Shown here in pieces: positions 36,201-39,200 of a DNA stretch of 64,000 nucleotides (positions are counted from its first letter, which is position 1; each line of letters starts with the position of its first letter). Source of the stretch: Ministeria vibrans ATCC 50519 (Eukaryota; Protista; Filasterea). The stretch lies in assembly GCA_943704425.1 (NCBI GenBank), contig CALSCP010000335.1, positions 161,406 to 225,405 on the forward strand, written 5' to 3'. Under the pieces are notes generated by a model. It did no database searches. It was not told the DNA's origin and was given only the letters and a program-made list of their open reading frames with translations. Both the position numbers and the translations under genes were made by a program.

Positions 36201-39200
36201 TTTTTGTTTGTTTTTGTTTTCTCTAGCTGCGCCACAACCCAATGTGGTGGACCCACGCGCGTCACGATGGCAAGTTGTGGTCGTTGAACAACTACCGCAC
36301 GGACATGATTCAGGCGCTGGGTGGTGTCGAAGGCATTCTGGAGCACACGCTCTTCAAGGGCACCTACTTCCCTACGTGGGAGGGTCTGTTCTGGGAGAAG
36401 GCCAGTGGCTTCGAGGAAAGCATGAAGTACAAGAAGCTGACGAATGCTCAGCGCTCGGGTCTCAACCAGATCCCCAACCGTCGCTTCACGCTCTGGTGGT
36501 CGCCCACGATCAATCGTGCCAATGTCTACGTTGGTTTCCAAGTGCAGCTTGATCTCACTGGCATTTTCATGCACGGCAAGATTCCCACCCTCAAGATCAG
36601 TCTCATTCAGATCTTCCGTGCCCATCTCTGGCAAAAGGTCCACGAGTCTGTCATCATGGTACGTTTCAAACATCATGAAAACTCAATAATTTGCCTACTA
36701 ATTTTTTTTTTTACTTTCTTTCAGGATCTTTGTCAAGTGTTTGACCAACAGCTGGACGCGCTCGAGATTGAGACGGTGCAGAAGGAGACTATTCATCCTC
36801 GCAAGTCGTACAAGATGAACAGGTAAAAAAAAACCACAATCCAATTGAGAATTTTATCGTGTTTTTTAACTCTTCATTATTTTTAGTTCTTGTGCAGACA
36901 TTCTTCTGTTTGCAGCGTACAAGTGGAACGTGAGCAAGCCGTCGCTTTTGGCGGATCCCAAGGACGACATGAACACGACGACGTCGCAAAAGTACTGGGT
37001 TGACGTGCAACTGCGCTGGGGTGACTTTGACTCGCACGACGTGGAGCGTTACGCTCGTGCACGCTTCCTCGACTACACCACCGACAACATGTCCATTTAC
37101 CCGTCGCCCACGGGAACTCTCATTGCCATTGACATGTGCTACAACCTTCACAGTGCCTATGGCAACTGGTTCCCCGGAATGAAGGTAACCCTCCTCCTCA
37201 AATTGAAATAATAATAATAATAATAATAATAATAATAATAATAATAATAATAATAATAATAGTTTTTTAAAATAATAATATATTTTTAATATCATCATTA
37301 TTAATCTTTTTCTTTTTTATTTGCAGCCTTTGATCCAGCAAGCAATGGCGAAGATCATGAAGGCGAACCCTGCGCTGTATGTGCTGCGTGAGCGAGTGCG
37401 CAAGGCGCTCCAGTTGTACTCGTCGGAGCCCACGGAGCCGTACCTGTCGTCACAGAACTACGGCGAGCTTTTCAGTCAGCAGACCATTTGGTTCATTGAC
37501 GACACCAATGTGTACCGTGTGACGATTCATCGTACCTTTGAGGGTAACCTCGTCACTAAGCCCATCAACGGCGCCATCTTCATCTTCAACCCGCGCACTG
37601 GCCAGCTCTTCCTCAAGATCATTCATACCAGTGTCTGGGCTGGTCAGAAACGTCTCTCGCAGCTCGCGAAGTGGAAGGTACCGAAAAAAAACATTTTTTT
37701 ATCATTTTTTGCGGTCATTTTCTTCATCCTTCTTTGTCTCATTTTCTTTGTTTTTTCTATTTAGACTGCTGAAGAAGTTGCGGCACTTATTCGATCGCTG
37801 CCCACTGAGGAGCAACCGAAGCAGCTCATTGTGACACGCAAGGGTATGCTCGATCCGCTCGAGGTACATTGTCTTGCCGAGGGCACTGAGGTGCTTTGTG
37901 TGGGCACCAACTCGGAGGGAGCACGCGCAACGCAGGCGGTGGCAGTGGAGCACCTGGCGGAAGGTGATGTGTTGCTCGACGAGCGTGGTCGCGAGACGGT
38001 CATTGATGGTGCAGTGCACACGGGTGAGGCGCAGCTCTTTGAGGTGTCTGCGACGCGTGCGGGTGCCGAGGTGCAAAAGTACCGTGTCACCGAGGGTCAT
38101 TTGGTAACGTTGCGCTGCGAGACCAATCCGGTGCGCATCCATGTGGTCAGTGGTACCAACAGCGACAAGAAACATCTTCGTCTCACCTACGCCGTGCATG
38201 CGCCTGAATCGTGCGAGCCGGTGACGTACGTATCGCGTGTGGTGCAGCCGCACGAGGTGCCAGTGGCTGATGACGATGCCGAGGTGATTCGCCAGCTTGT
38301 CAAGGAATCGTGTGCCTCCGGAGACGTATCCGATGCACTGCGCGCGGCCCGCGAGCGTGCCGAGCTTGCCATTTTCAAGCGGGTTCAGGGCAAGATGTTG
38401 CCTAAGGAACGACTGGCCCTCTACCGGGTCTACCTCGAGGACACGAAGCGCGTGCGTCTGTACGACATGGTCGATGTACGCGCCGATGTGTTGTCTAGTC
38501 TGTCTGACAAGAGTCCCCTCGCTGACTGGTTTGGCGGAGTGTTTGGCGAGGCGACCGTCGACGAGGCGGAGGAAGCGGAGGAGGAACAGGCGTCGACGAC
38601 ACTGTCTGGCTCGAAGAAGCGTGTGCGTGTAACGGTGACAGCGCCCGCCGAGGACGCTGCTCCCGAGCGATTCTACCGATTCCAAGTGTCGGGAGCGACA
38701 CGACGTTTCCTGCTGGCAGACCGCACGGTGGTGCACAACTGTGTGGATTTCCCGAACATTGTGATCAAGGGCAGTGAATTGCAGTTGCCTTTCCAGGCGT
38801 GCCTCAAGCTGGAGAAGTTTGGCGATGTGATTCTCAAGGCGAACGAGCCACAGATGCTGTTGTACTGTTTGTACGACGACTGGCTCAAGACCATTTCGTC
38901 GTACACGGCGTTTTCGCGTCTGATTCTGATCTTGCGTGCGCTCCATGTGAACCAGGAGAAGACCAAGTTGTTGTTGAAGCCTGAGAAGACAACCATCACC
39001 GAACCGCACCATGTGTGGCCGACGCTCACAGATGAGGAGTGGGTCAAGGTGGAGGTGTCGCTGAAGGATCTCATTTTGGCCGACTACGGCAAGAAGAACA
39101 ATGTCAATGTGGCATCGCTGACGCAGTCGGAAATCCGCGACATCATTCTCGGCGCGGAGATTAGTGCGCCGTCACTGCAACGCCAACAGATTGCAGAGAT

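Follow-up and report, generated by a model that had tools for sequence, protein, structure and literature searches.

The spliceosome has the protein PRP8 at its catalytic centre, and an intein within this protein ties the splicing of RNA to the splicing of protein. A 64,000 nt stretch of the Ministeria vibrans ATCC 50519 genome (contig CALSCP010000335.1, positions 161,406 to 225,405; the whole stretch is hereafter the window, and positions refer to it) includes a PRP8 gene interrupted in frame by 870 nt. Is this segment an intein that excises itself from an essential protein, and does it mark an invasion of a new position in PRP8? A first-pass annotation, made from the sequence alone, answered yes to the first and, for the second, proposed an independent invasion at a rare or undescribed site. 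Our analysis agrees on the first point and differs on the second: the segment is very probably a class-1 mini-intein at the already catalogued site Prp8-c of the only PRP8 gene, kept in the mRNA, removing itself from the precursor protein, and descended from a full-length Prp8-c intein whose homing endonuclease it lacks.

The insert and its transcript

Translation of positions 37600-39000, together with a motif script, places the insert at 37870-38739 of the forward strand, with 290 codons and no stops. It follows the PRP8 sequence ...G-M-L-D-P-L-E-V-H and precedes [11 protein letters not shown], the C-extein thus resuming with C-V-D-F-P-N. This insert, in frame within a conserved protein, has all the class-1 splicing residues: cysteines at the first (Cys1) and the following (Cys+1) positions, a TxxH motif and a terminal His-Asn pair. 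The annotated boundaries and residues of the 290 aa insert were found to be exact to the base. Its parts are as follows.

37870-38739, + strand: predicted mini-intein at PRP8 site c, 290 aa, without a homing endonuclease (frame, residues, retention in mRNA, modelled Hint fold and allelic relatives)
37870-37872, + strand: Cys1 codon, TGT, the N-terminal splicing nucleophile and start of block A (translation)
38089-38100, + strand: block B, T74-E-G-H77, the TxxH motif (residue positions)
38140-38530, + strand: middle region, around residues 91-221 (alignment and secondary structure of the model; boundaries approximate)
38533-38619, + strand: acidic low-complexity linker, around residues 222-250 (alignment gap relative to the two full-length alleles described below; predicted local distance difference test, pLDDT, below 50)
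38620-38739, + strand: blocks F and G, ending in H289-N290 (translation and alignment)
38740-38742, + strand: Cys+1 [quoted passage not shown] (translation; also Cys in all the allelic inteins and in that of Spizellomyces)

The host protein is identified by a Pfam match to PRP8_domainIV (E 7e-69) in the 660 aa reading frame at 37765-39744, the best stretch of which restarts at position 113 of the 230 in the profile directly after the insert. The counterparts of Cys+1 are Leu1876 in human PRP8 and residue 1948 in yeast Prp8, both inside the RNase H-like domain in solved spliceosome structures, and the segment around the insertion is near-invariant between this organism and human. Hence translation and structural alignment uphold the annotated position in this domain, as well as the emptiness of site a, the usual location in fungi. 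A six-frame search of the whole 29.7 Mb assembly (2,860 contigs) revealed one copy of PRP8.

Twenty public sequencing runs from nine studies, marine and seawater RNA libraries among them, contain the stretch or part of it. We compared contigs from three RNA-type runs, each from a different study and one being an explicit polyA RNA-Seq library of a marine sample, and from one DNA run, across positions 36200-40400. Seven GT..AG introns have been removed in all three RNA runs (joints at 36657/36724, 36820/36885, 37182/37325, 37675/37763, 39732/39788, 39924/39998 and 40205/40271). The RNA contigs are nevertheless collinear with the DNA over 37763-39450, with no joint at 37870 or 38739; the DNA run is likewise collinear over the insert, with zero joints. 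One RNA contig, of 7,884 nt, has about the length that would be expected for a PRP8 mRNA plus the 870 nt. An environmental RNA run carries three differences within the intein (A159S and two synonymous changes), with none listed in the flanking extein parts. The relevant features of the gene are these.

36403-36404, + strand: PRP8 site a (F-W-E-K-A/S-G-F-E-E), empty (sequence uninterrupted)
37678-37764, + strand: phase-0 GT..AG intron of 87 nt, exactly between A-K-W-K and T-A-E-E (joint in the three RNA runs, none in the DNA run)
37765-39452, + strand: single exon bearing the intein (RNA contigs collinear over 37763-39450; splice sites read from the sequence)
37765-37869 and 38740-39452, + strand: N-extein and C-extein parts of this exon (sequence)
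39453-39560, + strand: GT..AG intron of 108 nt, in frame and without stops (collinear contig pieces and sequence)

The reading frame at 37765-39744 runs through the last of these introns, where a trinucleotide repeat encodes a run of Tyr; the RNA contigs skip it.

The RNA contigs thus keep the insert whilst losing the neighbouring introns, which effectively rules out removal at the RNA level as the main fate of the 870 nt. Being present in the mature mRNA, the transcribed insert would be translated within the PRP8 precursor; and as the organism splices its introns, yet makes PRP8 only with the insert, the latter must either splice out or be tolerated. The single copy of PRP8 and the retention of the insert in the mRNA support the earlier proposal that pre-mRNA splicing in this organism depends on protein splicing.

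Modelled fold and allelic relatives

An AlphaFold2 model built on a seven-row alignment has a mean pLDDT of 72.5, reaching about 90 over the first 50 residues, and residues 222-250 are its sole disordered part. The top 11 Foldseek matches to this model are all PI-SceI or Cryptococcus PRP8 inteins (probability 0.99-1.00), whilst the first 29 rows returned by VIA-align are all Hint domains of inteins, BILs or Hedgehog proteins, with Z scores of 11.5 for 6MX6, 11.2 for 6MWY and about 10-11 for most PI-SceI entries. A search of the PDB sequences with a profile built from the allelic inteins matched the C. neoformans PRP8 intein (E 9.5e-6), with the stretch around block B aligned to block B of that intein, and also PI-SceI (E 0.048). 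At the level of the model, then, the insert appears to have a Hint fold; together with the splicing residues and the family homology, this supports its annotation as a class-1 intein.

The relatives were found by a phmmer search of the insert against 1.84 billion cluster representatives, which returned five proteins; four of these are fragments of PRP8 that bear inteins. Three metagenomic loci, here L001, L002 and L003, carry an insert at the same junction as the window (E-V-H/C).

L001:3666-5771: allelic intein, 702 aa (Pfam LAGLIDADG_3, 30.5 bits, above the cut-off)
L003:10274-12299: allelic intein, about 675 aa with one frameshift, in a low-coverage assembly (Pfam Hom_end, 23.3 bits, above the cut-off)
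L002:6413-7207: allelic mini-intein, 265 aa, with no endonuclease and 55% identity to the window intein

The match to the L002 allele has a phmmer E value of 1.8e-51. Identity over the N-terminal 100 residues is 44-58% to the three alleles, and over the last 40 residues about 70% to those of L002 and L001; blocks A, B, F and G are conserved in all four sequences. The three complete allelic inteins all have Cys1, T74 and H77, and the L003 allele, despite its frameshift, likewise has Cys1 at the start of its N-terminal piece; H289-N290 does not vary among the alleles. In the Pfam search, the N-terminal parts of L002 and L003 matched Hom_end_hint at E 3e-4, below the cut-off, whilst the full-length L001 allele gave only chance-level matches in a phmmer search of PDB. 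At the N-terminal junction of L001 (around 3655-3666) the extein and intein frames are offset by one base, one C of the expected G-T-C-C-A-C being absent; an error in the assembly is the probable cause, but a real offset would inactivate the gene.

No LAGLIDADG or Hom_end match was found in the window insert with Pfam, so that it does not qualify as a full-length, homing intein, and the endonuclease blocks of L001 and L003 correspond to a clean gap in both the window and L002 sequences; on these two grounds it is regarded as a mini-intein. The acidic linker occupies the position at which the LAGLIDADG endonuclease is located in the full-length alleles. The middle region consists of beta strands and three helices and ends in a conserved R-V-R-L...F-G-G motif, which stands just before the endonuclease in the full-length alleles; it is likely to be a leftover of a full-length ancestor. 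This ancestor would have been a LAGLIDADG-bearing Prp8-c intein of the type found in Spizellomyces punctatus and the two metagenomic eukaryotes, in which the endonuclease domain was lost and a short acidic linker left in its place, with change presumed to have run from the full-length to the mini form. With the endonuclease apparently lost, the window intein would no longer home, and vertical inheritance is to be expected. The window and L002 share both the mini form and its middle region, with PRP8 C-exteins that are only 71% identical; hence either the loss of the endonuclease is old or mini-inteins have moved between lineages.

The insert has a higher G+C content than the window as a whole (0.616 against 0.527). 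Third-position GC differs little between the insert (0.69) and the host exons (0.76-0.78), so this excess probably comes mostly from amino acid composition, and the figures suggest long residence rather than recent arrival. A profile search revealed no paralogous intein of the same family in the genome. Alignment-based searches of metagenome contig and viral contig collections found no relatives at their sensitivity, and there is accordingly no sign of a viral carrier in the collections searched at that level.

The PRP8 mini-inteins of Cryptococcus neoformans and C. gattii (6MX6, 6MWY; PMC6805012) are the best matches to the window intein by both structure and profile, the latter covering blocks A-B, and likewise lack an endonuclease and reside in PRP8. 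However, these occupy site a, in the 1585 loop of the linker region, with Ser at +1, whereas the window intein is in the RNase H-like domain with Cys at +1 and has around 130 extra residues between blocks B and F; class-1 chemistry is known for the Cryptococcus inteins and predicted for this one. Domain I of PI-SceI, the VMA1 intein of S. cerevisiae (1GPP, 1VDE), is the top Foldseek match (E 2.3e-6), although PI-SceI has an active LAGLIDADG domain, resides in a different host protein and is only about 20% identical. As VIA-align aligns 173-188 residues of PI-SceI to the window intein, compared to about 100 of the Cryptococcus mini-inteins, the model appears to keep structure beyond the minimal Hint core.

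Identity of the insertion site

The first-pass annotation held the site to be rare or undescribed and the insertion to represent an independent invasion. Seven PRP8 intein sites, a to g, were listed by Green et al. 2019 (PMC6805012), and site c is that of the Spizellomyces punctatus intein (Monier et al. 2013, PMC3749507), which appears in the supplement to Green et al. 2018 (PMC5784728) as 'Spizellomyces_punctatus_C' (KND02430 / A0A0L0HNA9; insertion point C; InBase Spu-PRP8). The N- and C-terminal sequences of this intein are C-L-A-A-G-T-K-V and R-F-L-L-A-D-W-T-V-V-H-N, with [11 protein letters not shown] at the start of its C-extein (PMC5784728); those of the window intein are C-L-A-E-G-T-E-V and [12 protein letters not shown]. 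In both, the junction follows E-V-H and precedes C-[LV]-D-F-P-N. The two therefore have in common the host protein, insertion point, Cys1, TxxH, His-Asn and Cys+1, and inspection of the supplement indicates that they also share G-D-V-L-L-D-E-R-G, V-T-E-G-H-L and R-F-L-L-A-D-x-T-V-V-H-N. They differ in that Spizellomyces, a chytrid fungus, harbours a full-length intein with a LAGLIDADG endonuclease, whereas the 290 aa window intein lacks the endonuclease and its host is holozoan-like on the basis of marker families.

The site is thus rare, with one matching entry in the 2018 catalogue, from the chytrid (PMC5784728), yet described, the junction being that of the catalogued Prp8-c. The notion of an independent invasion fares no better, as blocks A, B, F and G are common to the window intein, the Spizellomyces intein (by inspection) and the three allelic inteins. 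Sharing both junction and blocks with the site-c inteins, the element does not represent a separate invasion of a new site; from its sequence it belongs to the Prp8-c allelic lineage, for which both site and mechanism are already known. The window intein is itself absent from the 2018 table, in which neither its first nine nor its last eleven residues had a match (PMC5784728).

Searches of marker families in the genome found three integrin-beta genes, at least 28 SH2 matches and 48 cadherin-domain matches, and no Wnt, TGF-beta or light-harvesting proteins. Taken with the marine and seawater libraries, this profile would suit a non-photosynthetic, unicellular holozoan from the sea. Other holozoan PRP8 inteins are known at sites b, e and f in Capsaspora and at site a in Salpingoeca (PMC3749507, PMC5784728). 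No literature linking PRP8 inteins with Ministeria was found, a search combining intein and Ministeria giving unrelated papers, and 'Prp8 intein' was not in any match listed for a search on filastereans and ichthyosporeans. If the host is indeed a unicellular holozoan, this would be the first Prp8-c intein outside fungi in the literature searched.

At intein-free copies of site c, most species, including human, have Leu at the +1 position, whilst Salpingoeca rosetta and Mortierella elongata have Cys (E-V-H-C-L-D-F-P-N; PMC5784728). This Cys could have been left by an intein that once occupied the site, or else could be a pre-adaptation of the site.

A second PRP8 site in the RNase H-like domain, A-K-W-K/T-A-E-E, was reported in 2023 from Anaeramoeba ignava BMAN (Gallot-Lavallee et al., PMC10710043), and lies 35 residues upstream of site c. 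Where that species has an intein, the window has the spliceosomal intron at 37678-37764, at the same peptide junction (PMC10710043), a coincidence of the same sort as described for Bathycoccus PRP8. None of the three metagenomic loci has an intron at this point, and in L002 the Thr at +1 is replaced by Cys (A-K-W-K-C-A-E-E).

The lettering of sites is inconsistent between publications: V-M-D-L/C-Q-V-F is, by a count of 87 residues from site a, site d of Monier et al. (PMC3749507), yet site b in PMC10710043, which also reuses the letter f for A-K-W-K/T-A-E-E. Hence junction peptides, rather than letters, should be used in checks of novelty.

Competing explanations and implications

Several observations count against the mini-intein reading. 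The 290 residues alone match no Hint or intein model in Pfam, giving only chance-level matches, so the comparison to the Hint and Hom_end_hint models suggested in the first-pass annotation did not succeed with the insert by itself; nor did phmmer match the insert to any PDB sequence. A single-sequence AlphaFold model was unusable (pLDDT 35.6), the Foldseek TM-scores (template modelling) are modest at 0.25-0.47, and the assignment of a Hint fold depends upon the shallow seven-row alignment and family profiles. The block F Asp of L002, L003 and Spizellomyces (the last by inspection) is Ser in both the window intein and that of L001. Furthermore, the RNA evidence consists of assembled contigs, in which rare isoforms could be hidden.

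The missing Pfam match and the Ser in block F, alongside the decay implied by the loss of the endonuclease, would fit an intein-derived sequence that no longer splices and is tolerated on the surface of the RNase H-like domain in the mature protein. We consider such a dead intein improbable, as Cys1, T74/H77, H289-N290 and Cys+1 are all intact and are conserved in alleles only 40-55% identical, introns are accurately spliced in an organism with a single PRP8 gene, and a near-invariant segment would be unlikely to tolerate 290 additional residues. An independent invasion at an uncatalogued position has a lower probability still: the insertion is far from site a, the window intein is missing from the 2018 catalogue, and the pre-2023 literature searched names no intein site as being within the RNase H-like domain; however, the catalogue itself contradicts it, since the Spizellomyces punctatus Prp8-c C-extein gives the same junction, and shared blocks connect the element to that intein and to three more allelic relatives. 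Least credible of all is an unusual in-frame intron removed from the RNA, or an artefact of assembly or contamination. The G+C-richness of the insert relative to its surroundings might hint at either, and both were rejected on the comparison of RNA and DNA contigs: three RNA runs from as many studies keep the insert whilst losing every neighbouring intron, the DNA run is collinear across it, and the stretch recurs wholly or partly in the 20 runs. In addition, the boundaries have no GT..AG pair in the right register, and in third-position GC the insert resembles the host exons.

The mini-intein at Prp8-c hence remains the best explanation, and from its sequence it is almost certainly both real and active. 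Autocatalytic splicing is predicted from the intact catalytic residues, the essential and single-copy nature of the host gene, and the working removal of introns. It would begin with an N-S acyl shift at Cys1, aided by T74 and H77 of block B, after which Cys+1 would attack the thioester (trans-thioesterification); Asn290 would then cyclise, with the aid of His289, to release the intein, and an S-N shift would join ...E-V-H to C-V-D-F-P-N. The mature PRP8 would accordingly read E-V-H-C-V-D-F-P-N.

Broader readings are more speculative. Redox- or metal-sensitive conditional splicing has been proposed for the Cryptococcus site-a intein, and the response of splicing to metals and redox has been tested in that of C. 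neoformans. By analogy the site-c mini-intein, which retains its catalytic residues in distantly related eukaryotes, might persist because it acts on the RNase H-like domain as a post-translational switch, for instance with splicing made sensitive to redox state or metals through Cys1 and Cys+1; a related possibility is that site c was occupied early in opisthokonts, leaving the Cys+1 of Salpingoeca rosetta and Mortierella elongata as a footprint. We judge this pair of ideas unlikely.

The metagenomic relatives harbour further inteins in PRP8. L002:1-7207 (JGI metagenome 3300056827, contig Ga0558118_07331), which starts inside the gene, has at least six intein-sized inserts in the C-terminal part of PRP8, exceeding the five in a single protein that were considered remarkable in Anaeramoeba (PMC10710043); some of the L002 inserts carry frameshifts. 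Their junctions are before S-G-F-E-E-S (site a); V-L-D-L/C..H-N/C-Q-V-L; G-D-F-D/C..G-N/S-H-D; L-L-S/C..H-N/S-Q-N-Y-G; T-F-E-G..G-N/T-K-P-I-N-G; and site c. Intein inserts were located at L001:530-1393, around L001:1800-3333, around L002:3730-5006 and around L002:5100-6184. The junctions of these L001 and L002 inserts, K-M-N-S-S/C-A-D-I-L-L-F, Y-L-S/S-Q-N-Y-G-E-L-F and E-G-N/Q.. followed by T-K-P-I-N-G, were not matched to sites a to g or to the Anaeramoeba site in the literature searched, and may be uncatalogued PRP8 intein sites. These metagenomic PRP8 genes, each with between four and six inteins in its C-terminal part, may be more novel than the window intein.

The window case itself adds an intein with RNA support to the sparsely catalogued Prp8-c site. 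It offers a compact natural intein of 290 aa with Cys at both junctions, and shows an endonuclease-less stage of the Prp8-c lineage, in a host that is probably a unicellular relative of animals.

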